This document shows positions 23,381 to 47,192 of a DNA stretch of 64,000 nucleotides, piece by piece. The stretch is from the NCBI GenBank assembly GCA_051294905.1, contig CM119385.1:14756001-14820000 (forward strand), in the 5' to 3' direction. The position numbers and the translations under genes are program-made. Each line of letters opens with the position of its first letter. The first letter of the stretch is position 1. Source of the DNA: Botryllus schlosseri (taxonomy: Eukaryota). The notes below the pieces were generated by a model, which had not been told where the DNA came from, ran no database searches, and saw only the letters and a list, made by a program, of their open reading frames with translations.

Positions 23381-24195
23381 CTATGTTGTCTATTTCGCGA
23401 TATCAAGCAGCGGTGTAAAATCGTAGTCACTGGGTGAAATAAGACGACTGTCAATATCCAATGCTATAAAAATGGCAATGGTTGCACGAAATAAACTATT
23501 CGAAAGGCGAAGAAGTCCGAATTCGTTATCGACTGCAATGAAAACAACAGGCATGGAAATATCCCTGAATATATGTTTTGGTACTGGTAATGGGTAATAG
23601 GTAAACAAAACCGTTCATTGATCGTTTGCGCAAAAGGCACAAATGCGATTCAAGCGAGAGATTATCCTGTTCTTTCTTCCCGATTGTTCTCTCGCAATTG
23701 GTCATAAAAGAGACCGCGCTGCCACGATATGTCACTAAGGACTGAGGAGGTTTGGATTCCAGATAGGGACACCGTCGTTGTTTTGCGCCGGCACCGATTC
23801 GCAGTAACGTCTCGTGTGAGACAGCTTATTGATCATCCAATCCTTACAATTTATTTCCTGAATGCTTACGCACGCCTTATTTTACATGTACGTCAGGGTA
23901 CGTACCGGTTTGTTTGCTACGTTCGAATGCGTTGCATCGTAAAAACTGTGATCTATTAATAACTCCATTGCACTCAAATACTTTCCGTATCTTTGCGAGA
24001 CAAAATGCAAGCCGCGCAATCGGTGACATGACATGAGCAATCCACGCGCTCTCGCGTGAGCACGATGTAGCTCAGCAAACGTTTGAAGATAGTTACGGAT
24101 AACACGTGTATTTTATATGAAGTGTTTATTTTTTGCAGATATATCCAAACGCAGATAACGGTTTGGGGCGACCGAAATAGTATCGTGTAGCGATA

Positions 24196-24754
24196 ATGAA
24201 TTATCGAAGAATGTCGATGGTATCTACTCTGACAGCCGCTGTGCTGATGCTAGCTATATTCGCCGTGGACGACACTTCGGCACACAGGTACAACGGGGTC
24301 TTCACCCACTGCGGGAGCGACGCGGAGCATTTCATGAAATGGTTTTGCAGAGATCCGAATTTCAGATTTCCATTCCCGTTCAACCGAATATACCGTAAGT
24401 AAATCAAGATTACGTCATTGATTTCGTGGTTGTTTCAGAGCATAGCGAATTTACTCTAAACATTTCACCATTTTCAGCACCAAATATGGCTGCGATTTGA
24501 TTCTCGAATCGAGAATACATATATGTGATCTTGTATTTTCAGTCATTCTCCGCTACGGACCTCCGCACAAAATACTCTTCCCGTATCAGCACCAGGCTTG
24601 GCATTGCTGCCGGATGGGCTGCGACGAATCGGGCTATCGGAAGATGTGTCATTATCACCGAAAATTAAAAGTATGCGAGAGACGCAGGAGGCATCTGCGC
24701 ATCAGCGGGCGAGCGAAGCGTTTCTATCAGAGCGCCTGCCTGCTGAAGAATTGA
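24196..24754 (+). CDS. ILP-A: divergent insulin-superfamily prepropeptide, 136 aa (exons 24196-24394 and 24543-24754)
   Basis: Hydrophobic signal peptide; B chain CGSDAEHFMKWFC (C-x11-C); phase-1 intron GTAAGT..TTTTCAG; A chain CCRMGCDESGYRKMC (CC-x3-C-x8-C). Spliced length 411 nt, open to TGA. Confidence 0.9.
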
Positions 24755-25389
24755 ACGCGATATCTGACTCCATTGCGTATATTGCCGCGAGTAGAATCGT
24801 ACGAGAATCACCGAACGCTCTGGGAGCTGCTTGATGACATCATTGCCCTCAGTCACACTTGAACGGTCGTACACAACAACAAGAGAACGAGGGGTCGAGT
24901 TTATCCTGCAGAAACAGCGCACTTTTGCATAATTTTCTTTAGTACATCTTTTTTTATTCTCGATTTTTTAATAAATACTGGTGAGAAGCTTGGGTTGGTG
25001 GACGTTATCAAAACAATCTAGCCACTCGCGGGCCCTATTATGTTTTACATGACAAAGAGATGACTGATACGGATCTCTGCGAGGATACCTACTGATGTGC
25101 TTGCGCGAAACATAATGTTAGAATCGTATCTTCAAACAAACTTAGATGACTCGAACGCAATTCCGAGAAAAGGAATTTGCTGCCTACTAATATATCATAC
25201 ATCGCATTCGCGTGGTCATACCAAGGGGAGAAATAAAGTACAAAATGACATATCGCCTAGGAAGCAAACACTGGTACGGGAAGGATGATGTTTAGGTGCG
25301 ATTGATATTTTAGCAAGAACAAGCGCCATCTGTACTGGTTACTGAGAAGATTTTCGAGACATGGTCAATAATTTTATATGTTATAGCTA

Positions 25390-25680
25390 TAGTTGAAGAG
25401 CTTCTTAGAGGTACAGAGCTTCAATATACAATTGTATAGTATATTCACATTGAAATGAACCCGAATATTTTCAGCTGACACTCGTCAAAGATAACCGTCA
25501 ACAACTAGTCGAGAATTGGAAAGAGCATTGTATCGTATCACAAAATATGGTGACTTCATATTTTGTGATACGATTGTTGATACACAATGTTCTTTCCAAT
25601 TCTCTACTAGTTGTTGACGATGATATCTGACGAGTGTCAACTGAAAATATTCGGGTTCATTTCAATATGAATATACTATT
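25390..25680. mobile_element. Foldback/hairpin element with arms of about 120 bp
   Basis: 25436-25549 pairs with 25557-25679 around a GTGACTT loop. A one-arm copy lies at 53808-53985. Confidence 0.8.
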
Positions 25681-28600
25681 GCATTATAGCCATATAGTAC
25701 ATAGGCGACATGGTTTGAATATGTGTGTTTTCGTGTACAGTACAGTACATACATAAACATTCTACGAAGACAATGAAACTGCTTGGAATATCATTTCCAT
25801 TGCCCCACGTAGCCAGGATGGAAACAGGATGGACCGGTGGATTATGATTTAGGGAAGTGAACTTTTGTTGACAATGACTGGACGCCCAAATTCTTTATTA
25901 CTTAATGAATACAGATGATCCCACAATGCCCAGGTTAGCATTTGGGCCATTGGCACTTTTCACTTCCACATGGCTTCGCCACTGCATAACATGCATGAGC
26001 GACATTTCTGGAATAAATTCGACGGTGATATATATAGCTATATATTATATAATCGTAATACGACATTGTGTAGGAACAGACGAGATCGTTTGTGGGAGAG
26101 TTGATAATACCGATAGTCCAAGATACAATCAGACTGACACTTGGGCTTTGTGATGAAATAATGTTCGGCTTTGGGCTCTGATTAGCATTCCTATAAAAAT
26201 ATCAAACATCCTGACAAGTGCGAGAAACTGCGAGCATTGTCGGATGTATTATTTTACGACTGAAATCGGAATCCACAATCCTTCTTGATGTCATGTAGAG
26301 TACCGTGAAATTATAGATAAGTCGACGATTGAATCTACATTTTACAGTTGGTGGTACACAATATTTGCAGCCGCTACACATGAAGTGAAACTCTTTCAAC
26401 GCCAGTACAAAAGCCAGTCAAATATGAGTCCGATATGCAATACGTCATAGCATTAGAGTGGAAAGATATTCTGAATTACATATTCGATTCACATCTAAAG
26501 TGAATATGACAGTTGATTACAACCAGAAGATGGTGTATATTTTGTTGGACTTTTGATTAACTGGCTCTTGAAATGACCAATAGTACCATTTACAATTATT
26601 CATGCACACAGCATATCGGTATATTTGTAAGTGAATGTATAATGGGTACAGAAAAAGTGACATAATTCAACATAGTTACATAATCAGATCCGTTTCCTAT
26701 TTGACTAAAATTGAGCTACTGAGTCGATATCCATACAACTATTCATCACCAGGTATTGTCAGAACTTCGGCACATATTTCAAATACCGTTTCAACTTTCA
26801 AACTAAAAGAATTCTCGTGTTTTGGACAACAACTCTTGAAAAGTTCTTTGTTTCGTTTATAATCATTAAAGCATAAAAGCCTCGACGCACAACGTATTCC
26901 TGTCCTCTTTTTTGACGAACGGGTCGGGAATATTGCAGTCTGCGCGCAATTAGTCTTTCGAAAGTGGGGTGCATACAGAGGATCGCAATTGGAGGACAGG
27001 TAAACATATCATCACCATGTGATTTCAGTCGACAAGCTTGTGCTCAAAATAGAACAGTATAAGACTGGATATCGGAATGTCACGAATCTGTGATAGAAGC
27101 GATAATCTCAGTGTTATCTATGTTTTTGAAAGATCTCTTTTGTAAAATGCATGAAGGAGATAGGCGGTTTGCAACGCAATTTGCAGGGGAAGCTATTTTG
27201 CAACTATTGAACTCGCCAGGTTGCAATGCAAGACCGTCGCGATCAGGCGGAATTTCTCCATCAAACGAGACGAGATGTGGAAGAAGCACAATTACGAAAT
27301 GCCTCTCCTCTCCGCTTTCGCAATATGTTCCAAATGGGTCAAGAGTTGACAAAGTGTAATTGTGTTTAATCAAATCATAAGGAAACTGTCACCGAAAAAC
27401 AAACATGCGAGTATCACAAATCGATCACGGGGTTCTTCGATGTTCGACCTGCTATCTGTCTAATCCTAAATGATCGATTCGTCTACTGTCAAACTGTCGT
27501 ACATAGCAATGAAGGTATCCCAATATCTGCAATGCTACAACATTTACCATGCAGTTATAGTTAATTTTCGTCATTCACGTGACATCTAGTTGTCAAAGTC
27601 ATAAAGAGAAAGTCCCAGACCATCGCAAAACGCTAACAACAGATGACTTAAATTATCAGACTCGTTAGCTGATGACACAATATCGCATGCAACACCACAT
27701 ATGCTTCGCTGTCACGTTTCTAATCCGAGAGGGGTTGTCTATATTCCTTCGTATGACTTAGTAAATATTTCGGACATGAACCAGACAAAATCACCTCTCG
27801 ACTGATCAACGATTTGTTGTACAATGTGTACTGGTTTTCCGGCCACGAATCGAGCTCAACTCAGGAATCAGGACGCAATTACCATTCAGGTTCGGGGCGG
27901 CTTGGGTACACCTACCCTACACTGTACGATCCCGCCTCAGGCTTGATCGTGGTGTCGCAAAAGGAAATGAAGGACTGGCAGACCAGACACACTCAAACCA
28001 ACTATATCACAATGCTTTTTAAGCACCTAGTATCACAAATATGTGATATATACACGCGCGGATGAGGAGACCCACTGCAATGACGGATTTGTAACTATGA
28101 CCTGTGACCCACAATCACCACCAAGCTAATTCCTAGCCCTATCTAAAATAGTCATCATAGCGGAAGTATTCAGTCGTTTATAAGTAACCTGTGCAGACTA
28201 TTGAGAGTCATCACATCGTCATTATACGCCGATCACCCATTCAATGAAACGTATAGTGGATGTATTAAAACATCCAAGGGCATGGAGTTTCGCCCGATTG
28301 GAATTTCCAAATAAAGCACACCCTGCGATACGGAATGTTTCGCATTGGATAACACCAAATCGTTGGCGATTTTCGCAATTCAGAAGATTCTGCACACGCA
28401 GTAAGATTCACATACGGCGTCTCGGAACGGCGATATTCGCTCGCGGAATCAGAATATGCTCACGCAAATTGCCGCGCGATTGCTTGTTGGTGTCCTGTTG
28501 CGTAAAAAGCGGGCGTTCTTGTTTGGTAGTGACCGTCAGGAAATCCTGAAGTATTGGTAATGAAAAGAATTTCAGTGCCTAATCGTATATCGCCGAAAGG

Positions 28601-29849
28601 CCACCGTAACAGCGTAACACAGAATGAAGACGCCTAATCAATTAACTCGGACATCAATGATTCACTGGGTGGAAGTGTGTTTTTGTTATTTCGGGGTTGC
28701 GATGGCGCTGAAACTGCCGCGGATAATTCCCACAAAGCCGATCAGTATATTTAAAAATGGACGTGAGTATTCTTTGAACTTCGCGGGCTACATACGCCTC
28801 GGCGGATGAATTGAGATGAACCGACATCGTGTTGTTACACTTGCATTCTTGGAATTGACGTCAGAAACACATGCGTCACAACTCCCACCCCAGACTACGT
28901 GCACTGTGTAATGTACGTACACTGAACAAGTGCACAACCCTAATCGTATCTTCATGGTAGGCGTTCGGTGAGCTATTCATTGAGGCATGCTGTCAATTCG
29001 TAGCGGACTCTTGCTGCCTTTGGTCCGTATACAAAGTAGATACTTCCAACAATGTATCGTGCTTACACGTAATGAGATATACGGAAAATTCCTTGTATAA
29101 TACACAGTTTGTTTACGTTAATGTCGTCACTGTGTTTAAATTAGGTTAGTAAGATTTTCCGGCTTCATGCGCCGGAACGGAATGAACCAGAAAGGCGAAC
29201 ATCAAGCGATTGTGCAACGGCTGAAGATAGCGTAATCAAAGTTATGAAGCGGGCAGCAAATGAGGGGCAAATTTTCGACCTGCAGCATACCAATCAAAAC
29301 GCAATAACATATTGATATGCAATGAGTGAGTCTAAACACAGATGGGGTAACGCAAATCCCAGTGCACTAAATACAGTAGTGCTTCGTGAGAAAATTTCAC
29401 ATTTTACAATCCTGGCACCCAATATATATTGTTATCATGCTCGTCGTCGCCGCCTCCGCTGGATTCTGATTACACGATTCGTCATCGGATTGACCTCAGA
29501 CAAACTCACTAGTACCGTCAAAATACACGAATCATAATGGAAACAACAGTCAAAACATGTACCATGCTAAATTTGGCGATGTGACACTCCATAACTGCAT
29601 GGAATTTATCAGCAAATCGACAAGGTCGGTTTTTTATCAAATTTCAATTTCATCCTGAATTTACGATGACGCAATGAAATCGCATACGTCAACGGAGTGT
29701 AGCGCGTAACGTGATAGCCACGCACAATGATTTACTGTTCCTTCAAAAACTCGCTTGACCCCTAATCTCTGCTGAACCAGAGATATAAACAAGCATTCAG
29801 CGCACCTGTTTTTTCTTCGCCATTCGAATGTGATTGCCCATACTCTACG

Positions 29850-30800
29850 TAATGACCAATCGCAACGCCAGAACAGGTGGCAGTGGAAAATTGCTTATTA
29901 TCTGCAATTTTCCCGGAGACTTTGGTAAGGAATAAAAGCTTTTTGTTGCCCGGCAGATTAGTATCTTCAATATTTTTAGTAGTGATGCCGACATTGATAT
30001 CTGCAGAGTTTCGGGATGGCGAAAGAATTTTGATAGGACGACTATGAAGTGCTTATAAAGATATGATATCTGATGGAATACCACGTGACAGTTACTGAAT
30101 ACCGAGAAATAACGTTATTATATTTATCACCAAATATAGTAACATACACATCACGAGATCAATCTGACCATAATGCTAACGACACCAATAGCAATTCCTT
30201 AAGACTACCAATCCGATGGTTCACGTATACGTTGTCTTAATTGATATTTTGGACTATCATCAAAATTGCTTTATCCAACAATATGTTGCAATTTTGGGGC
30301 ATTTATTTTTGTAATGGAGCCTATTGTTTCTGCGGGTGACATCATAAAATCTTGCCGCCGTCGTGGTGATGTGTTCAAGCGGGGCCTACGATACTTATTA
30401 GCCGGTTCAAGATTTAAATTGTCGCCGATAACTATCCCCGTTCTAATGGTCGCCATGAGTTCTATAGCCTGCACAGTGCACAAGTGCACACTGCACAGTG
30501 CACATATATATTCCATGCAGAGAAATACCTTATTTCCAATCTGTATCACAAGTTCATTACCAATCTCTGACGCTGATGCTAATCGCAAACTTACCATGCC
30601 TGATATTTCTCGAAATTGTACTGTGTTTCGTATTTTATACGAAATTAGTGAGTTAAAACAGACGCCCCTCAATGGCGGAACTCGGTGGTTAATCCTCACG
30701 CAAACTATTAAGTATGCGGTTGCACTAATTCCAATCAACACTCCAAAGTCATACCGACAATACCGCCAAGTTAATGGATGGTTAATCCAACTCGACGAGC
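29850..30800 (-). mobile_element. Decayed LINE ORF2 endonuclease region
   Basis: On the minus strand, LIVCVRINHRVPP (cf. IVGVIYRPP), IVIGDNLNL (cf. IIGDFN), QRIREPS (cf. QLI.EPTR) and QIDLV appear in the canonical APE order. Confidence 0.55.
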
Positions 30801-31141
30801 TTTATCTCGAGTTTAAAATGTCACCCACAGCATTGCTTGTGTTTGATCTCAGCGAAATAACTTCTGATGTGAAGACATCATCCTGAACATAGCCCCGTGA
30901 CAGTTACAGACACAACGTGGAAAAAGTCTACGGTCATAGTGTATATTAATCCCTTTCATTTGAATTTGGAGTGAATTTTCACTGCGACAGAATTTTTCAT
31001 CCAAAATTAGATGTATACTTTCTTGCAAAACTCCAAATTTTCTGGAAGGGAGCGATTGAGGTCATGCTAACTATACTGTTGCTCGACTAAGCTGAATAAA
31101 ATGCATTGAATGCCATATTTGTATGGATTCCTTTTCTATAG

Positions 31142-31440
31142 CATTGCATAACGCGACGATATAAGGCATCTTACGGCGACAATAAAGCCCAGAAAAAGAC
31201 CCGACGAAAGAATGCACTCAAAAGGAATGGAAGGAATCAGAAAGGGCCGTGGCTTCAAAAGATCAAAATCGAAAAGAACTGTGACATCGGGCACTATATG
31301 CCGAGGTCGATGTCGGTCCGCATCTGCGCGTCGCTCGACATCCTCCTATCTGTTCATTACATCGTATTGTGTCTTATCGCATTGTACATTGCGTGTGTCT
31401 TGTTCAGATGAAAATACAACTCAACGATTGTTAATTATTA
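31142..31440 (+). repeat. Copy of the dispersed ~280-bp repeat, carrying an open 89-codon frame
   Basis: CTGTGACATCGGG, CATCCTCC.ATCTGTT.ATTA.ATCG.ATTGTGT and ATCGCATTGTACAT...CAGATGAAAAT shared with the reverse complement of 40038-40315. Confidence 0.65.
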
Positions 31441-34417
31441 TCGATTGTTGATCTGGGAATGAAAGTATTTCCAGCATATTCGAGGGTGGGGTAGCATTTC
31501 GCCATATATAAGGTGTAATTTGAAAATCGAATCTTGATGGAGAAAGGCAGTTTATTCTCGCCTGGGTGCCTAGCAGGGAATATGCGGATATCAGTTGTAC
31601 GATCAAATATTTCGTCTGACTCGGCCGGGATTAAACTCGCAACCTAGCGATCAAGAAGCAGGAGGCTCTATTATTCTGAATCGTCGTCGCGGAGTGGATG
31701 ATAAGAACGCAGATGCGCCCTGAAACTATACAGACTTGTTGCTCTTTACGGACAGGAAGATACCTGGGTTACATCATGTATCGCACTACATTCATAATTT
31801 CCGGCACCAAGATCTGAGAGGACCAAACTACTGATTTTACAAAAGTAACATCATTAGGAATGGAAAGGAATGGACATTGTGTATTTTTGTCCTTGGTGTT
31901 TTGCGGCATATACACCGCATTTGGAAAATTTGGCCAAAATCTGAGTCAAAATATTTAAAAATCTGTTTCTTCTATATGCTTGTAAGCCACAGTATATTAT
32001 ACATATCCTCAAATTCGGTATCCCTTTTTATGATTAGCGTAATTTATCATCGCCAAATTGCAATTACACAGCCCACCAAAGAACACGCTCGCAACTGCAT
32101 ATGATTGGATGCTAATATAATATTCAATCTGCAGTCAAATGTCTGTAGAAGTTATTACATATCATCGTGCTCGTGCTATGCATGAGTCACATGCGATAGC
32201 ACCGGTAACTTTAGATTATCACCAAAGTATAAACATTCGAAGACATCATCCCATTCCCTATTTCGGAATCTTCCTATGATCTAATGATTTGCCCGAGGAT
32301 TTCCACTCATACTCATATGCCATTGCAAGACCCTTATGTACCAGCATTATTCCTCTGAAGATAAAGAATCTTTGAAACATGAAGAGCGGCGATTACCAGT
32401 GAAAACGCAAATTCTCCCGCCATATTAAGCGCCGAGCTTGCTGGACTGCAATTGAACCGACCCCTATGAATTTAAAGTTACCAATAGCGTCACGTTTTCC
32501 CAGCTGATTCCCAATTAAAAACAAGTTTAATGTTGCCATAAATACGGACGCTTATTTATCCAACAGAAATAGACAGAGGAAGGTACGAAATGCGACGGAA
32601 TACACTACAATTAAGAGCATAATGAAAACAGTAACATCCCGCCATCTTGGCGTCATGGGAAATCAAAAAATTATCCGTGCCGACCTGCATCAGCTGAGAT
32701 TAAAATATTCCACAGCTTTACATATACGAATCACCAGCGGCGGCTTATAGTGGAGATGATCCGAGAGGCCTTCAATCTGATATTTCACCCTTGAAAGTGA
32801 CCCCTCAGGTCTTAAAGTCAAGGACAATCGGACGGATAAGGGGATTTTGCGGTCAACCTAGCGACGCCTTTCCTAACCTGTCGCTATTTCGGTAAGATTA
32901 CAGCTGGTGATGAACAATATTAGTGTTGCTATATACAGGCTTGGTTTGTTTTCCCAAGTACCAGATTTACTTTGCGAAGAGTGTACTAAATTCGAATATC
33001 CCGATTTTGTGATCATGTGTTGGATCTCTTCTTATATAAGATATAAAACTGTTTATTACAAGCGTAATAATTATTGCGATACATACAGACCCATGTCTAT
33101 ATTAGGTCTGAAATTTTCAGAAATATGTCGTGTACTACATACGGCGACATATGATCACAAATATTTCACAACTTAATCCATATTAATATACTAGTGCGAT
33201 AACTCATCAGACTATACAGAGAAATATACACCATGATATTGCACATAGCCTACTATAGACCCAGATCATGTAGCATTTTACGTGTCAGTTTCCTGCAATA
33301 TCAATTCAATTGCGAATCCTTCTTACAATTGTAGATAATCGCAGTATACAATAAAACTATGCTTTAGAAAGAAAGCTGACAGCTGTGTATAATTTCCGAT
33401 GGGGCGTACAACTTTGGCATCGCTATTCTGGCATATTAGCCACCAACTGGTTAAATCTAATGACATACAATGCAGTTACATATTTAGACAAAAATACAGA
33501 CGTATTTCCTGTAGATCGGTAGATAAATATTCATATATATGTGTATTTCTTTTGCGTCATATAGATTTCCTTTCAATAGCAATCATATGTACCAGGCTTC
33601 ATTTGCGGTGGCAATAAATCACGTGATTTCATACTTGGATGAAATAGCGCCTTTTTATCGGCGAGAAGAGCAATTATTCCGTACTTTGCAGTGGGGATAA
33701 TGATATAATACCGCCATACTACGCCGAAACTTTTCTGGGAAATTAGTTTACCACCAAGTTCAATATTTGATGCCGTTTGCTTTTACAAATAAGCCAGCGA
33801 TTGCTATTTAATATAGAAGCATTAAATTGAAGGTAAATTCCTTGTGAGTCATTACGCCAATAAGATGATAGCATCACTCCCTTCAGTTTGGCGATCAGTC
33901 CGCTACGTTCCTCAGTCGTACCTTGTAAATATTAATGTCATGATTGAAATATATTGGCCGTTGGCTCATGATGGTCTAACTACGGCAAAAGCACTTGTCT
34001 AAACATTTGCTTTAGTCCCTATAAATAGAAGCTCAGATAAAAATAGTGTCCGTTTAATATGTACAGATCGGGCGATCATGATTACGCCACTGGCGTAGCA
34101 GCATGTGCTGCCGCCCCTGGCTCTCGCTTAAAATGCCGCCCTCCCTAAGTAGACCCCAGCTAATTTCGACATATATTCATGTTCAAGCAATCTTGTCAAT
34201 AAAAATAATTACAAATAATATGCGGCGTGTTGTCAGCCTCACTGTCTCAGCCGAAATAAGGCCAAAAATATTAAAGACAAGAAATGGCGAACGAATGTAG
34301 TGTGCAAATAGAATATCAATAGCCGCCTTAGAACTTAACTTTTTGGGCTTTGCTGACGCGAAATCAGCGTTAATATCCTCAAATTCAAGATTTTGAACGT
34401 AGTCTTGTTTTATAGAC

Positions 34418-35780
34418 AAGTGGTTGCCAACCGGGGGTCCGCGAAGCCTCTAAATTTGTAAAGTCATTGATAACTAGGGCTGGGCACAATTATTCGAGTA
34501 CTCTAATCTGAATCGAGTATTAATTTTAATGACTCGAGTCGAGCAGTAAAATACTGTTTTTTCGAGTACTGAAATTATACGCTCCTCAGCACTGAAAGTT
34601 AACTTATCAACGAAAATTATAGTTTCGATACTCTTTTCCACTGTGGAAGCCTTGAAACCTTGATTAGCCGTATCGCAGCATACAAAACATGGTACAAAGA
34701 AACGAATGTTACTGGAAATCTGAAGTCATTCTCATATCACAACATGGTCTGGTCACAAAGTACGAGATCGGTATGGTCGAAAAACATTCAAGTATTTTTA
34801 ATGTAATAGATAAGAGGCATTATATTCTTTGTGGTGGCATAAAAGGTACATATTTGAAATTTGACATATTACCTTATGTTATGATGTCATAATGTGCGAT
34901 ACTCGAATACTCGACTCGAAGCATAATACGCGATTCAAAATCGAATCACTCAGGTATACTCGATAATGCCCAGCCCTATTGATAACCTTATTTACATTTT
35001 TTTAAGTAGGAAAAGCATGCTGGGACAGTTTTCGCTTCATAATTACTAAAAATTTATGACTAACGTCATTAAAATGGTCGTCTGAGATGAAATATCCGAC
35101 TGTGCAAACTCATTTTATTGTCAACTTACCAATAGCATGCCGATGCAAACATATGTTTTGTTAAGGTTTCTGAAAAAGTAAACGTTGGAGATAGCAATTT
35201 GGATTTGCAGTCGTCAGTCTCAGCAAATTTGTAAACAGTCGTTTGAAATAGAAATCCCTGAACTTTTTTTCCTGATCTGTCCCAATGAAAGAATTGAAAC
35301 CGCGCCACGAAGTCCATTTCCTCCCGTGATATAACCACTAAATAACTTCAAGATGAGATGCTAAAAAAATGACTATAGGCTGATGGACATGATATGTTCA
35401 TTACAAACACACACCAAAAGCTGTCGTCGGAAGCGTTACGCGTTAATATTACATTCGCCACCAATATATATTTGTGGAAATGGATTTTCGGCACTCGTTC
35501 ATATCCAGTCAAAGACGAGGATTTTCAAGATAATAAATACAGCTGGAAAATTCGTTTCGAACTATTAAAATTCTGCCAAATTTCGACATATAGTGTGAGG
35601 TCATTTTGAATAAAATTGATTTTCTGGCTGTTTATTACTAGCCTACAATTAATGTTTGCACGAGACAGTTGACGGTTGCACGATAATTGGGCTAATTTTA
35701 AGCGAAAACTTGAGGGGGTCCGTGGGGGTCTGTGGCGGTCCAAAAGGGGCCCGCGAAGACAAAAAGGCTGAGAACCACTG
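34418..35780. mobile_element. Charlie-type MITE nested in the hAT remnant
   Basis: Ends AAGTGGTTGCCAACC / GCTGAGAACCACTG; flanks TTATAGAC / CTACAGAC (6 of 8 match). Removing it restores the transposase frame. Confidence 0.75.
34475..34978. mobile_element. hAT MITE (TAGGGCTGGGCA TIR), innermost of the nest
   Basis: TIRs TAGGGCTGGGCA / TGCCCAGCCCTA; perfect TSD TTGATAAC. Confidence 0.95.
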
Positions 35781-38700
35781 CTACAGACAGAATGGATAGA
35801 GCTGATAGCCGATCATCATTCATGGTAGAACGTAAATAAGACTTAATCAGTTTGAGCTTTGAGAAGCTCCTCGCACAGCTCGCAATTGAAACACCAATGG
35901 CCAGATGAAGTTCCAAACACGAGCATAACTATGGTGTCGAATGAAGTAGCTTTGCATTAACTAACCAACCATGATTAGGAACAAGCGGTCTTAGCGGCTA
36001 TTTCGGAATCGTTCCATTGCCATGTTAACATATTAATTCGTGTTTTCGGAATTAGCGTGATACTAGCTTTCGATTGAGACCGACACTATAGCTTTCTATT
36101 GAGACAAGTTTGATTAAATTTTAGCTCACAGGACGTCAGCTATAGGAGTACCAATTACGCAGCTTTTAATCGGTTGTGTACACTGTGTTGTGTAGCCTCA
36201 TTTTTCCGCCCCCTTGGAGCCTGCCGCCCCTGGCGCAGAGCCAGAACCGCCAAGTGGCTGCTACGCCACTGGATTACGCAACGCCGACTTTGATCAGAAT
36301 TGGCAATGTTGTATACAAGGGTTCTGACCAACCAGTCGTATTTCCATCCATATTGCATTTTGCATCCATTTTCATTTTTAATAAATGCTTCGATGAAAGT
36401 GTAACTATTGATGTCAGTAATTGGATAGAACTGGAACAATATTTCCCAAATGCGAATTCACAACTGAAGCAAATAGTTCAGACGAGTGGCAATCGCTACA
36501 ATGCTACCTGGTTAAAATTTAATATGGAACAACAATGTGCCATTGTAAATCAGAAAGTGTTGGTCAAACAGATTGCACTTATTATGTCTGTGAACAGGGC
36601 CAATGAACATTGAACACTTATTCGTTGTTTGGCGCGTTGCACCCTAACAGAAGTGAAACCAAAATAACCATATAGCCCGACGAAGACATTTATAATGAAC
36701 ACTTTTTATGAGATTGGTGATTTTAAATCAGGTGAGACCCCAAGTCTATATAGAGACAATCTACGTAATCGTACACGATATACAGTACCGCATGTACCGT
36801 AAAACATTGCTCTGCAATAGAATCAAGCTATCCATGTTACGTGCAGAATTTTATAACATACATGAAATAATGTACGGTGCGGTCTACAGTACATGCGTCA
36901 CGTTAATCGTGTATTTAATTTTACAGGGCTATAAAATACGGCAAACTGTTGAAGCATGGTTAAGTTGAAGAAGAATAATCGAACACCTACACTAAGTCGA
37001 CTTTTATTAGTCTTGAAACGTTGAGGCTTAGTGCCATGTGCGGCATCAAATAAACAACATAAGATACGTAGTTACATTGCAACAATTCTCGCCTTCTGTG
37101 TAATCGCAACATGTGGAGCTAGCAATCGTGAGGACCCGTTTTACGCGAAACAAGCGGTAATCTCCACGTTAACCGCCCGTGACACATTTGACACAAAATG
37201 ACGTAATCGTAATAGATCAGCCGTAATTGTATGTTTTTCGGAGTAGTCAGCAATGCCTCGGCGCTGGGATCAAGCGTCCCTGTGAGAATCACAGCTCTCC
37301 TTCGCATTAGTCAGACTGTTTTGAACAACGGTGCAACTTGAAAAAGTCATTAGTTCTAACACTCATAGATGTAGCTACTTAGCATGACCCAACCGACCAC
37401 ACTGCCGCCCGAGTCTAATAATACCGGCGTGTGGTTTTTATGAAGAAATTACATATTTTCCAATTCGACACGCCGCGCACGCTCGCGAAGCAAGGTGACT
37501 TGAAAGATCGTAAACACGGAGGGAAATAATTGCTCGGACGACGATAGTAGTTCGGAACAAGTTGAAATTGCCGTAACTACCCGTGACAGCGGATACCAGG
37601 CAATTAGCAGTTCAGCAGCTGTGCTATTTTATTTACGGATTCCCAACGACGTTTTACGGAAAATGAGGCTTTTTACCTCGAAACTGCTATGGATGTTATC
37701 TTCCATTGTAAGTATTTGCAGACTTTATAATCCTCTGCGGGAGATACGTGATGCTCGCCCAGACAATGCACGTTGGACATGGACATGCCTTCGATATCAT
37801 TGTTTCCATAATATCGTATTGATGCACATCTCGGTGAAGGCAGACCGCACCGCGTAGCCCCGCGACCACTAAACACAAACCAGGACAATATGCGATGAAT
37901 TGTGAAAACACGGCGCGGTGTAAATAGCGGGCGGGAAGTCATAACAAAGTCTACGCGCAAAGACGTATTCGCGATTACAACTGTGTCTGAGCAGGAAATC
38001 TAACGCGGAATGACATGAAATACATACGGCGATAGTGTGCTTTCTACAAAAACCGCCAATCACACAGTAAAAAATGGATTTTTAAAGTATCTGCAGAACC
38101 AAAAGTCTTATCTCATCATCGATGCTATTAAAGTCTCTTTAGACTGCAATAAGTAATGGCTGAGCTAAAAAAAAGCTCTGGACTCTATTACACAGATTTT
38201 AATCGGTGCCGCTGACACCGATAAGGTTTCAGCGTTGCAACGCTATGATTTTGATGCTGGCGAGCGATTCCCAACGAGAAGGGACATGTCAAATGTTTGT
38301 AAGAAGTGCACTAAAACAGCTAGATTGTGGCTATCATTGATCGATTATGTGTCAAAGTATGCTGTACACAGTTCATACTAGGCTCGCTTGTGACATTCCC
38401 TTGTTTATAGATCTCCCTGAACACATCGCCATCAGGCTAAATCCTACCTCAGCAACGTGTAAAGTAAACTGGAAAATGTGCCATAATACATTCTCTATAA
38501 CGCATGATCATTGTTACCATCCTTTTATAATCCTAAGAAATATGGCATGCTTAGCAATGCCGGCGCTATACTCTGATGCCCGTCCCTAAGGCCAACATCA
38601 TACGCTCAATATCAAAACCGTGCGACCGCGCATTCACGCAGGGAAAATTTATGTGTTTCGTATGCCTCGATCAGGTCACATATGTTATACTTGTTTGACC

Positions 38701-40037
38701 GGCACTAGTTTTGAACAGAAAGTGAAAGTGGGTGTAGAAATTAATACGAAGTGAATACAACAATCAGCTGGCATCATCAAGGCAGTTATAGAAACGACAT
38801 CAGATAGCTAAATAAATCAAAATCTTTTAATCTGACGGAACGTGTGAATGTGACCCCTACAAATATTCCCTGGCTTTTATTTAAGCCACTGATCGCAAAT
38901 GCATATCTCCACGGTAAATCGGAGACGAGCGACACGGATCGGGGGTATGGAACACATATCAACCGTACAAATACTAATCGGGCATTATCAAATATTTATT
39001 TATCTTACTGAAACCAGCTCACGCAAAGATGTTGAAAAGGTCTCTCGGGCGTGCATGTTCCTTCGCACTGTGCGGTTAATTTGATTATTTCCGTGCTATG
39101 GTGTCGATCGCGAGATCCGGGTTATTTGGGTAGAAAGCAGTCGCGCTTGAACTTAGCACGGTATTGGCCTTTTGATTCTGTAACGCTCACAGTCCCGGCA
39201 TTTCGCAATCTAACCAGTAATCGGTTGAAGCTTTTGCAATAACTTGCGGGCGTGTTTCCTCCCGTACTGGAGACGGTGTGACGAATTTGCAGGAAACTCC
39301 CTGACATCCGATGCGTTGTCGCATCACGACTGTCGCCGCATTTGTAATTAATATCGCTTCGCGGAGAAAGAACGAACAAACACAAAACAAATAAGTAAAC
39401 AGCGGACTGTGGAAGACGGAGTAACGTCCTCAATTTACCCAGGCGGAAATCCTTCGATAATATTATTAGCGGTTCCCAGGGAGACTGATATATCTGTCTT
39501 CTTTCCGCTGTAACATATTCGACTGTCGGATTATGTTAATCCACCGGAAATGTATTGCATTCCCTCGAATTTCCATTGTTATTCGCGTCAGGTAACATTA
39601 CCAGGCGTGCCGCTTTTGAAATTATGAATTCAAATATTTTCCATCTGAATTAATTGATATCGGTTACTCGTTGGATGTTCATATTATTGGTTTACACTTA
39701 CATGTTGTCAGGTAGGTACCCGCATATGTCTACATATAGGTAACCCCTCTAATCTGACAAATCTATACAGACAAAGATGTAAAACATAATCACCCTTACT
39801 ATAGTTATATTGGTTTGTTTCCGGGAATAATGTGCACATTTGAAAAGCCGTATAAACAACACACCAATACCGTTCGGGTGAACACACAATACGAAGTGCC
39901 GTACGGGATCTAGCTTGATTTGATATCCGTATTGTATCATAAATACCAATTGGGGTATTGGCTATTGCATAACCTTTTTTTGTGATCCCTAAATCGCGAA
40001 CCCAATAGTTTCATAGGTTCGCGTTCGCAGAGGAGGT

Positions 40038-40315
40038 TGTACACAATCAATCAATCAACCAATTACATTTTCATCTGCCCACGACACACACAGACACACA
40101 CTATGTACAATGCGATGTACAAGACACACAATGCGATTTAATAAACAGATTGGAGGATGCCCAACAACCAGTTGCGGTCTCTTAATCTGGCATCCACCTC
40201 GGCCTGTTTCCCGATGTCACAGTCTTCTTTGATGTTAATCTTTCTTCGGCGGTATTTCTAGCTTTTTTTCTTCATCGGGTCTTTATTACTGTGCTTTTCT
40301 GTAGCCGTAAGAACA
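40038..40315 (-). repeat. Dispersed ~280-bp repeat with TG...CA ends (possible solo LTR)
   Basis: Begins TGT and ends ACA, has an internal AATAAA, and is homologous to the 31.1-31.4 kb and 12.95-13.1 kb copies. No TSD found. Confidence 0.5.
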
Positions 40316-40323
40316 GCGAGACG

Positions 40324-40581
40324 ATAGCGTAGTGGTATAATCCACAGCTACGACACCCATGTTCGATTCCGACCGAGGTCGACTCCAGAATTCCTTCCCA
40401 TGTGTTGGAGGTTTATCTAGGCTCCTCCTCGCTATCTCCCCCGCGTAAGCGATGACTTACAAAAAGCCTAGAATTGGGCCGTGCAACAAGTCGGCAGATA
40501 CGGAATCGAAAATAAGGTATCGGCCTGGTGTGAATGGCCATAGCAGTCGACAAACACCATGAATATACCACAAACAACAAC
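40324..40581 (+). mobile_element. tRNA-derived SINE, copy 1
   Basis: A box TAGCGTAGTGG, B box GTTCGATTCC, (CAA)n tail; flanked by AACAGCGAGACG at 40312-40323 and 40582-40593. Confidence 0.75.
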
Positions 40582-40621
40582 AACAGCGAGACGTGGCGAG
40601 ATACAGCGTAGTGGTATATAA

Positions 40622-41887
40622 CAGTGCTGGGATGACTCGAGTCACTTAATTGACTTGACTTCAAGTCATCAAGTAATCGGTGTCAACTAAATCGCTACAT
40701 CATGTATATGTTCTGATTGTAACGTTACGTTGGTGTGACCTGCGAGAGAAAACCAATCACTCCATTCCATGATCATGCGTTTTACCGAGCCTCTATTGAC
40801 ATATCATAATCGTATAGACCAGTGGTTCCCAACCTTTTTCGCCCCATCGCCCCCTTTTCAGGGTCAACAGCGATCATCGCCCCCCAAATTTTGTGTACCG
40901 AAAATAGGGAGTACAAACTGTAATCACCGGCGGGTTGACTAAAAAAAAAAAAAAAAAAAGGTCAAATTTTCGGCTCGATGTCTAATTTGACACAGTTTTG
41001 TAACTAAATTTCAGTGGGTTGACTAAAAAAAAAAAAAGGTCAGCCGTTTTGACGCGCCATCGCCCCCCTATCGCCCCCTTCGCTATTTTCGCCCCCCATC
41101 GCCCCCTTTGTCCATTTTCGCCCCCCTGTCGCCCCCTTCGTCATTTTCGCCCCCCTAGACCGCCAAATCGCACCCTGGGGCGATATCGCCCACGTTGGGA
41201 ACCACTGGTATAGACCGCAAAAGCAGAGATCATGAGAGCTTACCTTATACAGCTTACGGCATGGTAAACTAATAGTGAAGTAATCTAATAGCAATGTATT
41301 TCTGTTTGATAAACTGCCCACAGAGCCCAGTGCTCAATTGCTCATATAACCAACTGTCTGATAGGAATTAGATCGAATACCGTTTATACGTTTATATCAC
41401 TCATCAACAATTGGAGCATGCTTAAATTGTATATCATGGATGTTTAGGTGGGTAGTGTATTGCATCATACCAATTTTTTTGAACTTTTTGAGGTTTCGAA
41501 TTCTATCCTGTATTTTGGCTGATATAATTATAGACTGAGGCAGGGACTGTGCCGTTACTAGCGTCGTTTAGCAGTTCTCCGCATGCGCTAGCGATAAAAC
41601 TCTCTTTCCGTGTATAATCAACTCTATATTCGTTCCTCTATTCAGAATAAGTATGACTCAATCTGCGTTTAAAACAGTTCGCAAAATTAAATGTCGTTGT
41701 ATCATGCCTCGTGATTTGAATATTCAACTCGACTTGACTGGAGACTTGACTCGTGACTCGACTTGCCCCGACTCGACTTGACTCGAGTCACCTCCAAAAT
41801 TTGAGTGACTTGACTTGACTCGAGTCATAGTATGCACTGACTCGAGGTGACTTGTGACTCGAAGGTATTGACTTGATCCCAACACTG
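40622..41887. mobile_element. hAT MITE of the GACTCGAGTC family, copy 2
   Basis: TIRs CAGTGCTGGGAT / ATCCCAACACTG; TSD GTATATAA / GTGTATAA (1 mismatch); homologous to 22407-23380. Confidence 0.9.
40820..41207. mobile_element. Charlie-type MITE with ATCGCCCCC repeats, nested in 40622-41887
   Basis: TIRs CAGTGGTTCCCAAC / GTTGGGAACCACTG; perfect TSD GTATAGAC. Confidence 0.95.
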
Positions 41888-43521
41888 GTGTATAATCCAC
41901 AGCTGCAACACCAATGGGTTGCGGATTCGAGTCCGACCGCGAGGCCGAGTCCACAATTCCTATACCTAAGTGTTGGAGTTTTATCTAGGCTCCTCCTCGT
42001 CATCTCATCCACGTGAGCGGTGTTTTATAGAAAGCCTAGAAGGGTGCCATGCTATATGTCGGCAGCTGCGGAATGAAAGAAAATCGGCCTAGTGAAAATG
42101 ATCATGGTCGTCTAGACGTCTACAGACAGCATGAACACCAACAAACAAACAGAGAGACGGGACGACGACGACGGGACTTGAACCTTGCGTAGATGACGCC
42201 GACGCTCATCACTAGGCTGTCTCCTCCTCTACATGTCCTACGGTCCTACATCGTGAGCACTTTTAGTGGCAAAGTTAGTGGCAAAGTTCGCCATGCCTGA
42301 TGAAATTAAAAAATATATATATTTGGGTATGTTTACTGAAAATCGGTGTGACTTATGCTGTTGTTCCCTTTCCGCGAGGCCATGGGAGAAATGCGAGGCT
42401 TCACCTTAGAAGAAAGTGTAATCGTATTGTTCGGTCGAAACGCAGCATCGTGATACAAATTGCATATCGAGCTAATAAATACTGGATATAGAATCGGCAT
42501 TTCAAAAGGACGGGGTTGCGATTACGAACCCCAATCTCCCTAGCTTACGTCATTGCACACGGCGCATGTGCAACCCGCCAGGGATGCCTACGTCTATATG
42601 CTGAATCAAGTCATTGTTTAAACCTTGGAGTTTAGACAAACAAGCAAGTAGTTTAAATAAAACCCTGAAGATTACTCAAATTGTATAGTAAATGGGGATA
42701 GTGAATTAGTTAAATACCCTTAACGATTACTAGATATTATAACTTCTACAATAACGAATGAAGATATAACTATAATCATGCAGCAATTCTGGAGGATAGT
42801 CATGAAATTAGCTCGGGACTGAGTAGCTGCATATTGGAGTGGTCCTATTTCGCCTATACCCTAAACTAAACACACAACATCTTCTCTACAGATTCCGCGA
42901 CAGGAATGCCTCGCGTAAACTCGACAGCGACACTATGCGTAGCTGCGAATCCCGACTTTTCAACACACATTTCAAAGATTGTATATATGAAAAAACGTGT
43001 TCGAAAAGTCATTCCATTTAGCAGCATAAGAACAGATCATAATGAAGAACAGAAAGACGCATTCGAAACGCTGACCTAAGCGGAAATATATTTTATGACA
43101 CACTGGCGACTCTCCAGCACCAATTCACACTAACATTACAGGATAAATAAATATTACAAAAAGATGCACAGATATCACGGCAGTATTGTTAGTGAGTATG
43201 ATTTCAACGGGTATAAAAAATTGACGGCATAAAGTAGCGATAAGGTAATGGAAAATGTTGTAAATAACTTACAGATCTCCCGAGAAGGGAGTTTAAATAT
43301 TGTCATAAAAACACAGTGAACGATTACAGCGGTTGCCTGAAATAACGTTCAGAGGCTCTTTTTCTTATCAGAATAAGTCAAGTAGTATAAAGCATACGTT
43401 ACAGAGCACAGCATACTGCATTCGTGTATGAATCGAAATACTGTAGCCTGCTTGTTAACGTTATGCTTGGTAGTAAATCTGCAAAGTGGACGCCAGTAGT
43501 GGAATCCCCAATAGGGATGCC

Positions 43522-44096
43522 TTACAATTGATATTGTCGCAATATCTTGTGCGGTAGCCTGCGGAATTTGCCACCGGGTGTACTACGCTTTCCTCTGAAT
43601 CTGGATAGTCGGGTTGCGAACCCCTCAGAACTCATCTGATGCTCCGTACGTTGCACTAGACAACGGGCGTACATAATGCGACCGCGTTTGGTATGCATGT
43701 TCTCGCCCTTGGAGCAAGTGTGGTGCAATTTGTGGTAGTAACACATTTTGATGAATCCGACATGTTCGCAGCCTCGTTTGCAGCACATATGAAACCGGTT
43801 TTGGAACGGATACAGCCTCTCGTCAGGTGCGCGAGATCGCAATACCACTGTAAACAGTAATGTAAATATGAATGTTACAAACTCACACGAAAATAACCAG
43901 TACGCGTAAACTACTCACAATTCCATCTGAGTGTTTGGAAAGGATAGTGAAATGAGTCGTCGCGACAGATGAAACGCATGTCTTTGACAGCAAAAGGTTC
44001 GCATACGTGACTATATCTCCTAGAGTGACTGCAGTGACCGACAGAAAAGAGCATTACCACAGCCAGCAGGCGCAGAGCAGCGTCACTTGTATTCAT
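43522..44096 (-). CDS. ILP-B: divergent insulin-superfamily prepropeptide, 167 aa (exons 44096-43919 and 43847-43522)
   Basis: Signal peptide; B chain CEPFAVKDMRFIC; phase-1 intron GTGAGT..TTTACAG; A chain CCKRGCEHVGFIKMC; basic tail containing RGKR. Spliced length 504 nt, open. Confidence 0.88.
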
Positions 44097-44784
44097 CCCG
44101 TTACTAGCAATCAAGTATATACACTATATATGAAGGTAATTCTGTAAAAACAAAATTAGATTTATATTATTATTATTGTTGTTACAATTGCACTCGCTCG
44201 GTACCAGTTGGACTGGGGAAATTGTGTTCGGCGTTCAGGGTAAACCATTATTATGTACAGCACAACTAGCAGATCACATATACATTGAGATCGATCACAC
44301 AATTAAACACAAGTCTAGCAACCAACTTTTCGCATCTTTATAAAACACATACAAGCTGGTCTTCGTGTAGAAGAGACGCTCAGAATAGCACGAAAAAGGA
44401 CAATTTCAATGCTCTCGAACATAACGCGATATCACGGCGTTTCACAAAACCAACTCATCGGAGTGCGTCAAGTACATTCGACATCAGTAATGATTCGCAA
44501 ATCACGCGAATATTAAACTTTCTTGGCGCATACGCAAAGGATTATCGAAATTGCGTAAATCCAAAACGGCCATGCTACATTGCAAGGGCGGTACAAACTG
44601 ATCACTGATCAGTAAGAAGCAAAGGTAGTCAATAAAACTTTAATTCTCCAATACAAGCAGCTATGTATATATCACAAAGTATTTCCGATGAATATATATT
44701 TATTTAGCTGACACAAGTCCATAAATATAATGATTATGTGTTTTATCTTCATTTTGATGACTACTTTTAGCGCTTTCCCCACTT

Positions 44785-45062
44785 TCATTGCCGCTTCCCT
44801 TCTAAAATCCTCCTATGCTTCCCGTGCCTCCTGACTCCTTTTGCACGATCGGCTCTTTCATGTCGCGTAAGGCAATTCACTCGTATCCTGTACCTGGCTA
44901 CTCCGCTTGCTGCTTTTGAGCGGGCATCGCAGTGACTGTACCAGATTTGGTGCGGTCACATTTTGTGCAGCTCTTGTTCGTAGCAGCCTCGTTTGCAGCA
45001 ATTTCCGGCTTGGTGTTGGTACGGGTGAAGGTTGTGATCGGGCAGACAGTGGCGCTTGCAAA
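44785..45062 (-). pseudogene. Orphan duplicate of ILP-D exon 2 with in-frame TGA at the last A-chain Cys
   Basis: Same length as ILP-D exon 2 (278 nt) with an intact TATTACAG acceptor; reads CCKRGCYEQELHKM then TGA at 44958-44956 where ILP-D has TGC. No exon 1 of its own. Confidence 0.88.
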
Positions 45063-45149
45063 CTGTAATACAAAGTAAAGGGATAAACGAAACAGCACGC
45101 ACAGTACGAAAACAGTACTAAGACAGTAAATACGAACGTTCATACCATA

Positions 45150-45673
45150 TTATAAGTGAAAATTTATTGAAATCACAGTATATATATATGCGAACCCCTC
45201 TAAACGCATCAGATGCTCCGTACGTCCCACTAGACAACGAGCGTACAACATACGACCGCGTTTCGTATTCATGCTCTCGCCCTTGGAGCAAGTATCGTGC
45301 AATTTGTGGTAGTAACACATTTTGATGAATCCGACATGTACGCAGCCTCGTTTGCAGCACACATGAAACCGGTGTTGGAACGGATACATCCTCTCGTCAG
45401 GTGCGCGGGAACGCAATACCACTGTCAACAGGAATGTAAATATGAACGTTACAAACTCTCACGAAAATAACCAGTATGCGTAAAATACTCACAATTCCAT
45501 CTGGGGGTTTGGAAAGGATAGTGAAATGAGTCGTCGTTACAGATGAAACGCATGTTCTTGACAGCAGAAGGTTCGCATACGCGACTATATCTCCTGGAGT
45601 GACTGCAGTGACCGACAGAAAAGAGCATTGCCACAGCCAGCAGGCGCAGAACAGCGTCACTTGTATTCATCAT
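45150..45673 (-). CDS. ILP-C: recent paralog of ILP-B, 150 aa (exons 45673-45493 and 45421-45150), with a C-terminus derived from intron sequence
   Basis: B chain CEPSAVKNMRFIC; A chain CCKRGCVHVGFIKMC; phase-1 intron. Spliced length 453 nt, open; ends AYIYTVISINFHL past the duplication junction. Confidence 0.85.
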
Positions 45674-46352
45674 CTTACTAGCAATCAAGTATATACACTA
45701 TATATGAAGGTAGCTCTGTAAAAACAAAATTAGATATATACTTTTATTATTGTTGTTACAATTGCACTCGTTCGGTACCAGTTGGACTGGGGAAATTGTG
45801 TTTGGCGTTCAGGGTAAACCGCTATTATGTACAGCACACAGAACAGATGACATATACATTGAGATCACACAATTATGCAAAAGTCTAGCACTCGACTTTT
45901 CGCATCTTTAGAAAACACATTCAAGCTGGTCTTCATGTAGAAGAGACGATCAGAATAGCACGAAAAAGGACAATTTCAATTCTCTCGAACATAACACGAT
46001 ATCACTGTGTTTCACAAAATTAACTCCTCGGAGTGCGTCAAGTGCATTCGACACCAGAAATGATTCGCAAATCACGCGAATATTAAACTTTCTTGGCGCA
46101 TACGGAAAGGGTTATCGAAATTGCGGGAATCCAAAACAGCCATGCTACATTGCAAGGCAGTGCAAACTGATCAGTAAGAAGCAAAGGTATAGTCAATAAA
46201 ACTATAGTTCTCCAACACAAGCAGCTATGTTGTAGATAATAACAAAGTATTTCCGATAAATATATATTTCTTTAGCTGACACAAGTCCATAAAAATATTG
46301 GTTATGTGCTTTATCTTCATTTTGATGACTACTTTTACCGCTTTCTCCACTT

Positions 46353-47192
46353 TCATCGCCGCTCCCCACCTAAGATCATCCTGTGTCTCCCGTGCCTCCT
46401 GACTCCTTTTGCACGTTCGGCTCTCTCATGTCGCGTAAGGCAATTCGCTCGCATCCCGTACCTGGCTACTCCACTTGCTGCTTTAGAGCGGGCATCGCAA
46501 TGACTGTACCAAATTCGGTACGAGCACATTTTGTGCAATTCGTGTTCGTAGCAGCCTCGTTTGCAGCAATTGCCGGCTTGGTGTTGGAACGGGTAAAGCT
46601 TGGAATCGGGCAGGCGGTAGCGCTTGACGACTGTAATACAAAGTAAAGGGATAAACGAGACAGCACGCACAGTACGAAAACGGTACTTAGACAGTAAATA
46701 CGAATGTTCATGCCATATTTTAAGTGACAGTTTATTGAAGTCACAGTATACCAAAACTGTTAGAGATTGTCTGGAGCAGACAGACGCGTATTGTTAAAGT
46801 GTGGCTCCATACCATCTATATATCACTGGATAGAAGTACGACCAGACAGCTTTGAAGACAACGTTACGCACGTAGTATCGTAAATATGCTGAGAGATAAT
46901 GTCCATCGATATCTGATCAATCTAACCCTAATCGAGTTATCGCGATCGTGGTCGATGGTCGATGGATTCTACTTTTCTGGTATTAAAAAAAAATCGCATG
47001 CTACTTACTGTGGTCTCTGCTGAATTCGAATGGAAACTCAAACGCCGAATTTTCGCAAAACCACGCCAGGAACCGCCGCGCGTCATGTGAACACATAACG
47101 AAAGGCCGCATGCCGACTGATGATCCTGACACGCTGGACGCGAGGTAGAACAAAGCGACGGCAAATGCGCCCGCCTTAAATATATTTTTCAT
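46353..47192 (-). CDS. ILP-D: divergent insulin-superfamily prepropeptide, 153 aa (exons 47192-47009 and 46630-46353)
   Basis: Signal peptide MKNIFKAGAFAVALFYLASSVSG; B chain CSHDARRFLAWFC; phase-1 intron GTAAGT..TATTACAG; A chain CCKRGCYEHELHKMC. Spliced length 462 nt, open. Confidence 0.9.

Follow-up and report, generated by a model that had tools for sequence, protein, structure and literature searches.

Highly divergent, probably insulin-like genes of Botryllus schlosseri and their relatives across tunicates

Introduction

Do four small genes of the tunicate Botryllus schlosseri encode members of the insulin superfamily, and if so, how do they relate to the families already described? The question is raised by a stretch of 64,000 nucleotides on contig CM119385.1 (GenBank assembly GCA_051294905.1, positions 14,756,001 to 14,820,000), which we call the window and in whose numbering all coordinates are given. 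An initial annotation, made from the sequence alone, had proposed that genes A, B, C and D of this window form a distinct, lineage-specific subfamily of insulin-superfamily genes. Our analysis leads us to consider it likely that A to D encode secreted and strongly basic proteins which belong to the insulin/IGF/relaxin superfamily but have diverged very far, and that their family extends across the tunicates. The proposed membership is backed by several kinds of evidence, namely the cysteine framework together with a phase-1 intron, profile matches to sequences of the Protein Data Bank (PDB), AlphaFold2 (AF2) models and fold searches, language-model features, and the position of the intron in Styela and Ciona.

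Gene models and cysteine framework

We scanned the window in six frames for the A-chain motif, and exons were joined at canonical GT-AG sites. The motif CC-x3-C-x8-C occurred only four times in the 64 kb, and in every case the motif C-x11-C was located 150-450 nt upstream on the same strand. The B-chain strings quoted in the initial annotation were recovered by the same scan.

Gene A lies on the forward strand. Its exon 1 (24196-24394) encodes the signal peptide, the B-chain-like helix with C-x11-C and the motif F-x-F-P-F, and ends in phase 1. After a predicted phase-1 intron of 148 nt (24395-24542, GTAAGT...CAG), exon 2 (24543-24754) encodes the second half of the connector, CC-x3-C-x8-C, the seventh cysteine (Cys7), a basic loop, the eighth cysteine (Cys8) and the stop codon, and the product has 136 amino acids (aa). 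The other three genes lie on the reverse strand and also have two exons each. Gene B (44096-43919 and 43847-43522) encodes 167 aa and has a phase-1 intron of 71 nt (43848-43918); its exon 2, which runs to the stop codon, carries an RGKRS site in the tail. Gene C (45673-45493 and 45421-45150) encodes 150 aa and retains all eight cysteines, and gene D (47192-47009 and 46630-46353, to the stop codon) encodes 153 aa and has a phase-1 intron of 378 nt (46631-47008). The layout described at first, in which A faces a B/C/D array of the opposite strand about 19 kb away, was confirmed; that is, the two parts are convergent and the distance from the end of A to B is 18.8 kb. The count of four intact genes needs some correction. 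Two-exon models with a signal peptide and the cysteine motifs were obtained for all four, but C is a duplication copy and not an independent intact gene, as described below.

Insulin-like genes characteristically carry a phase-1 intron in the C domain (PMC8286064). The introns of A to D all follow GT-AG, are all of phase 1 and all fall within the 16th codon past the second B-chain cysteine (B-Cys2), just as the initial annotation had stated, and those of B, C and D are confirmed by RNA. All four proteins begin with a hydrophobic, signal-like N-terminus. They are strongly basic (22-31 Lys and Arg residues versus 8-12 Asp and Glu residues), and the paralogs of the window are only 29-35% identical to each other.

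The six cysteines first regarded as the full set are not the full set, because two further conserved cysteines had been overlooked; eight are invariant in all four proteins. Cys7 is placed 8 residues past the last A-chain cysteine (C-x8-C), and a basic loop of 17-20 residues separates it from Cys8. In A, B, C and D alike, B-Cys2 and the CC doublet are separated by a spacing of exactly 36 residues. The B-chain-like helix is followed by F-x-F-P-F at the position of the aromatic triplet B24-B26 of insulin, and the A-chain-like segment bears the glycine of the relaxin-type CC-x-x-G-C.

A ninth cysteine (..GHCSHS.. or ..RHCAEA..) is common to the B- and C-type proteins (44030-44036 and 45604-45610, reverse strand) and to residue 22 of P0002, a relative from another species. 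It is located at or directly past the likely cleavage site of the signal peptide. If retained in the mature protein, this residue would be unpaired and could permit covalent dimers.

Similarity to proteins of the insulin superfamily

We searched the PDB sequences with profiles of the family. With the exon-1 profile, the three matches at E<=10 were IGF-I, the insulin B chain and IGF-II, and in these alignments cysteine was matched to cysteine and F-x-F was laid onto the insulin aromatic triplet. The exon-2 profile matched the A chains of Con-Ins, INSL3 and relaxin-3. With the full-length family profile against all PDB sequences, 15 of the 17 matches at E<=10 were IGF-I, IGF-II, INSL3 and relaxin, and the best of them was IGF-I (E=0.029).

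AF2 models, built on 21 aligned rows, were made of the relative P0005 (Styela clava LOC120340975) and of the core of P0002. Their predicted local distance difference test (pLDDT) values were 86.3 and 89.8, respectively, with about 88-95 in the connector. Both models showed the three helices of the insulin fold, namely the B helix and the two A helices, and the connector was confidently placed. When the core model was used for a Foldseek search of Swiss-Prot, 28 of the best 30 matches were insulin, relaxin, INSL, IGF, Con-Ins and insulin-like peptides (ILPs), and the template-modelling (TM) scores normalized by hit were 0.52-0.63 in the fold searches. In the VIA search of the PDB with the same model, all nine chains at Z>=2 were IGF-I, IGF-II or single-chain insulin, and the alignments covered 50-57 of 50-60 residues; the best match was IGF-II (Z 4.2 over 57 of 60 residues). 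The language-model features of P0005 also pointed to the superfamily, since the top named clusters were PF00049 (score 0.85, 189-193 shared features). Our verdict does not depend on any single score. The family is judged insulin-like because the hits of separate methods agree and are near-exclusive.

Several observations weigh against this verdict. The HMMER search that the initial annotation had suggested returned no insulin match; that is, single exons, the cores of A and D and 10 full-length relatives gave no match to PF00049 at E<=10, and the only related match was a stray one to Ins_beta (E=0.62, P0009). A match to PF00049 is a detection tool and not a biological criterion. Every similarity score, taken singly, was non-significant, the best values being E 0.029 in the PDB, E 0.3 in Foldseek and Z 4.2 in VIA. 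The suggested check by AlphaFold and Foldseek therefore came out in two parts: the insulin-like three-helix fold was found in two relatives, but with E-values of 0.3 or worse. The modelled structures are those of relatives and not of the spliced proteins of the window. The model of the whole precursor gave uninformative helical matches in Foldseek against the PDB and in VIA, because the signal peptide and the tail swamped these searches with long-helix matches, a problem that was solved by the trimmed core model. As for single residues, B, C and D have lost the glycine at B8, and the insulin-type IleA2/ValA3 and TyrA19 as well as the relaxin motif RxxxRxxI are all missing. Finally, 7 of 15 family members carry one dibasic pair within the connector, and some members may be cut into two chains.

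Relatives in other tunicates

A profile of the four second exons was scored against 1.84 billion representative proteins. Only 11 matches were obtained, all of them precursors of 126-170 aa that were matched in their second half. Five of these come from named species, namely two isoforms of Styela clava LOC120341590, Styela clava LOC120340975, Ciona intestinalis LOC100177666 (P0008) and a protein of Clavelina lepadiformis; the other six come from unnamed transcript assemblies. Styela, Ciona and Clavelina each stand for a different one of the three classical orders of ascidians. One transcript-derived member starts with what is presumably the Ciona-type leader.

The source names of the relatives in NCBI and UniProt are all 'uncharacterized' or 'unnamed'. 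The expectation that routine annotation would miss these genes thus proved right, since Pfam is blank and the members in Styela, Ciona and Clavelina are labelled 'uncharacterized' in both databases.

The six-cysteine framework, C-x(10-12)-C plus CC-x3-C-x8-C, is present in A to D and in the 11 relatives, and the connector has 36 residues in 11 of 15 non-redundant family members. Ciona LOC100177666 and Styela LOC120340975 likewise have an intron of phase 1 in the 16th codon past B-Cys2. The closest relative of gene A that was found is Styela LOC120340975, with 42-50% identity per exon. In Styela the paralogs number at least five over about 50 kb; the first three lie on one strand and the next two on the opposite one, a convergent layout like that of the Botryllus window. 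In the family tree only the clade of B and C with P0002 and P0012 was resolved, the latter two being from another species; the RGKRS site of the tail is common to B, P0002 and P0003.

Because the family is present in at least three tunicate genera, we consider it to be an old subfamily with recent local duplications. That is, the lineage-specific character claimed at first holds for the local, recent duplications but not in the sense of a species-specific family.

P0007, a family member of 170 aa from a transcript assembly, has an insertion of 26 residues exactly at the conserved intron position, which probably stems from a retained or alternative intron translated in frame.

Word-indexed homologue searches, the index of which is too coarse for this family, added no members. 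Exon 2 of B gave no candidates, the family alignment gave 6 known members only, and Ciona P0008 against 5.8 billion clusters including nr and UniRef gave only itself. A neighbour shared with Styela (8093-8905) was considered as synteny and rejected, for it is a decayed reverse transcriptase of a long interspersed nuclear element and the similarity is that of a repeat. This decayed non-LTR retrotransposon reverse transcriptase, at 8093-8905 on the reverse and 7081-7221 on the forward strand, retains an FADD motif and contains in-frame stops, and it resembles a copy that stands beside the Styela paralog.

Tandem duplication of the B/C/D array

Self-comparison revealed a tandem duplication on the reverse strand, with two units of 1.57 kb (43615-45182 and 45189-46750) that are 89.9% identical. 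One end of the duplicated unit lies within the D intron and the other within the ancestral B-type exon 2. Gene C is the upstream copy, that is, a recent partial duplicate of B. The two differ at 20 of 137 residues, the ratio of nonsynonymous to synonymous substitution rates (dN/dS) is 0.61, and the non-coding identity is about 92%. The active duplication supposed by the initial annotation therefore holds for B and C.

The same duplication replaced the tail of C and left an orphan exon between C and B. At the duplication boundary (45189), past ...EGFA, the tail of C departs from that of B, with the eight cysteines kept. The orphan exon, D' (44788-45063, reverse strand), is a pseudo-exon copy of D exon 2 with 86.6% nucleotide identity, and a stop codon stands in place of the fourth A-chain cysteine. 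D' serves the transcripts of C as an out-of-frame 3' exon.

A candidate fifth, intronless paralog at 9528-9945 was rejected; tblastn with all family members gave no match there at E<1, and the open reading frame that starts with the ATG at 9528 meets a stop codon after 24 codons. No Rfam families were found in the 64-kb window.

Transcription, splicing and the spliced leader

The initial annotation had named the absence of spliced transcripts as a result that would speak against it. Such an absence was not the outcome. Raw RNA reads of run X23 cross the intron joints of B (43847/43919, 23 reads), C (45421/45493, 25 reads) and D (46630/47009, 24 reads, with contigs as well and a depth of about 0 inside the intron), and the three joints are also present in RNA contigs of other runs. 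No further coding introns were seen in the RNA of B or D. As for gene A, the share of the sampled words of 24150-24800 that is present in RNA assemblies is 0.52-0.64, or about that of the exons.

The first exons of the array, including the 5' untranslated regions, extend over 43919-44143 in B (ATG at 44096), 45493-45717 in C (ATG at 45673) and 47009-47227 in D (ATG at 47192), all on the reverse strand. Each begins at a trans-splice acceptor AG (44143-44142, 45717-45716 and 47227-47226, respectively). Reads that pass the 5' ends at 44143, 45717 and 47227 all enter one common foreign sequence, and such leader-bearing reads numbered 15 for B, 39 for C and 68 for D. No copy of this leader was found within the 64-kb window, so that an upstream cis exon in the window is ruled out as its source. 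Among chordates, trans-splicing is known from tunicates only. The leader on B, C and D matches GATTGGAGTATTTGGTTGTATTAAG, which PMC3795323 lists as the spliced leader 'Chordata 1'. In gene A, a T-rich tract followed by CAG (24137-24138, forward strand) stands 58 nt before the ATG as a candidate trans-splice acceptor.

One RNA contig with a poly(A) tail ends at about 45715, and AATAAA is found some 30 nt upstream of that point (a loose poly-T before 45715 in run X6); the simplest reading is that the D mRNA has its 3' end here. This putative end coincides with the trans-splice acceptor AG of gene C at 45717-45716. The RNA depth is unbroken from the D stop codon to about 45715, and a lower level continues from C to the acceptor of B. 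The B acceptor is the homologue of the C acceptor because the duplication copied the D/C junction. The packing of B, C and D at these junctions (45715-45750 and 44141-44143, reverse strand) is operon-like.

Within exon 2 of C (45150-45421), an internal donor at 45196 is joined to 45062 in D', as seen in 29 reads and one contig. Most C transcripts are spliced in this way, out of frame, which gives a product of 203 aa with an unrelated tail. Another joint connects exon 1 of C with exon 2 of B (45493/43847), skipping 1645 nt, and was found in contigs of two runs and in 9 raw reads. We treat this joint as unproven because the first exons are near-identical by the donor and B-type letters appear in C of other individuals; contigs of runs X6 and X7 have such letters within exon 1 of C. 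The joint could be read-through splicing, a haplotype free of the duplication, or the result of misaligned near-identical exons.

Proposed architecture and processing

From these results the following architecture can be proposed. The precursor would consist of a signal peptide, a B-chain-like helix between cysteines 11 residues apart, F-x-F-P-F, a connector of 36 residues for which a structured state is predicted, and an A-chain-like segment. The second A helix is predicted to run on to Cys7, from which the basic loop would lead to Cys8 in a C-terminal helix. The three canonical disulfides of the superfamily, B7-A7, B19-A20 and A6-A11, would be joined by a putative staple between Cys7 and Cys8, and this bond would hold the C-terminal helix against the second A helix in its extended form.

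The mature product is probably a single chain, like IGF. We think so because the connector is conserved and confidently modelled and because, in the proteins of the window, it is not surrounded by paired dibasic sites. Within the connector no dibasic pair is found in A, B and C, and D has a single KR. In the family as a whole 8 of 15 members have none, and two separated sites (RR and KR) are found only in Ciona P0008. Processing may differ among the paralogs, since some carry a dibasic pair in the connector, basic sites in the loop or RGKRS in the tail.

The array of B, C and D grows through local tandem duplication and consists of closely packed transcription units, each of which is capped by the spliced leader. 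The most speculative step of the proposal is that the products may signal through the tunicate insulin/IGF-type receptor tyrosine kinase. An insulin-receptor-type kinase is weakly favored as the target; the B segment looks like that of IGF and insulin, and a glycine of the relaxin type is present in the A segment.

Comparison with known families and other explanations

Among the known families, vertebrate IGF-I and IGF-II share with the present proteins the B-domain pattern C-G-x...-C-x4-F-x-F, a C-terminal extension and, probably, the single chain. The C domain of IGF is flexible and has 8-12 residues, whereas the connector of this family has 36 conserved and confidently modelled residues. 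The family also differs from IGF in its two extra cysteines past the A domain, in its A-loop CC-x-x-G-C, in not being detected by PF00049, and in having one coding intron only. Membership in the IGF group thus fails on connector length and gene structure.

Octinsulin is an eight-cysteine ILP of the Ambulacraria, with two coding exons and a single phase-1 intron, and it is amplified in some lineages (Veenstra 2021, PMC8286064). It resembles the present family in all these respects, both being deuterostome ILPs. The placement of the extra cysteines is different. In the Acanthaster octinsulin coding sequence (PMC8286064) they form C-x2-C right after B-Cys2 and, at the end of the A chain, a CC doublet, whereas in the tunicate family they stand 8 and about 26-30 residues past the last A-chain cysteine. 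Moreover, the C peptide of octinsulin is flanked by KR, whereas the tunicate proteins are mostly without KR sites. Identity with octinsulin is ruled out by the cysteine placement.

The multinsulins of sea stars are also clustered and locally duplicating, and their RNAs combine exons of neighbouring genes (PMC8286064), which may be compared with the unproven joint of C exon 1 and B exon 2 described above. They differ from the present genes in having four coding exons, KR sites and another placement of the extra cysteines.

The resemblance to relaxin, INSL3 and relaxin-3 raises the question of the receptor. It may be supposed that A to D are insulin-fold ligands of the relaxin/INSL type, which act on leucine-rich-repeat G-protein-coupled receptors (LGRs) and not on the insulin receptor kinase. 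The shared CC-x-x-G-C glycine and the long N-terminal A helix ahead of CC would suit this explanation, as would the A-segment matches, the best of which are the A chains of INSL3, relaxin and relaxin-3 (E 0.16-0.3), and the presence of relaxins among the best structural matches (Foldseek TM by hit 0.56-0.61). In contrast, the best alignments of the B segment are with the B chains of IGF and insulin, F-x-F at B24/B26 included, and paired processing sites from which a two-chain peptide could be freed are lacking in most members. The family has extra cysteines, no long excised C peptide and no RxxxRxxI/V motif; in the alignments this motif was not found in register in A to D or their relatives, and membership in the relaxin group fails on this point. 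We therefore regard action on LGRs as rather unlikely, although it is the explanation that retains the most weight among the alternatives considered here.

Slightly less probable is the explanation that A to D are tunicate ILPs already described, either INS-L1, INS-L2 and INS-L3 of Ciona (Olinski et al. 2006) or the insulin/IGF cDNAs of Chelyosoma. If this were true, the biology would be the same and nothing would be new. These genes share with A to D the animal group, the superfamily and the phase-1 intron in the C domain. Ciona is reported to have three ILPs of the clustered type, classed as insulin-, IGF- and relaxin-like (PMC12702675; PMC11661445), and they may have come from searches by cysteine pattern, which would also catch the present family. 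On the other hand, the sole family member found in Ciona intestinalis bears the RefSeq name 'uncharacterized protein LOC100177666', there is a single entry in its UniRef100 cluster, and no similar protein, named or not, appeared with the coarse index of 5.8 billion clusters. No second family member was found within 10 kb of it, and neither its accession nor signature peptides of the family were found in a literature search. The Ciona member has no name in RefSeq or UniProt and no named relative. On this indirect evidence, the published INS-L1-3 are probably other, more canonical genes.

It may also be considered that the insulin scaffold serves here in a non-endocrine role, for example as a cationic protein secreted for host defence, for reproduction or for another effector function. 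The very high net positive charge would fit such a role, and so would the low identity of the paralogs, the recent duplication with the B/C dN/dS mentioned above, and one exon in decay. We think this improbable in view of the core motifs, connector length, intron position and eight cysteines, which are conserved across several tunicate genera and suggest a binding partner that is specific and conserved. An unrelated cystine-rich secreted family with insulin-like cysteine spacing by chance or convergence would explain the blank in Pfam and the lack of any pairwise score significant alone, but the profiles, AF2 with Foldseek, VIA and language-model features return almost only insulin-family matches and the phase and position of the intron fit the superfamily, which makes this explanation very improbable indeed.

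Taken together, the genes of the window are best read as belonging, probably, to a tunicate-wide and unnamed branch of the insulin superfamily, the products of which would be single-chain, IGF-like ligands with a fourth disulfide. We are inclined to think, with some reserve, that this branch represents an unnamed fourth kind of tunicate insulin-superfamily ligand, distinct from INS-L1-3 and from octinsulin and characterized by a fixed, structured 'C peptide' of 36 residues, a disulfide-stapled C-terminal helical hairpin and duplicating arrays resolved by the spliced leader.

Implications

The family is real, expressed and conserved. Its recovery indicates that cysteine pattern, intron phase and structure prediction together can find hormone genes which libraries of hidden Markov models miss, and that the connecting segment of an insulin-like precursor can evolve into a conserved structural part and is not always a disposable spacer. 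Its members, including the single-copy Ciona LOC100177666, are candidates for orphan signalling via the tunicate insulin-receptor kinase or LGRs. Vertebrates have the tunicates as their sister group. A conserved and expressed ILP family that is invisible to domain annotation would alter the count and the classification of the ILPs of chordates.

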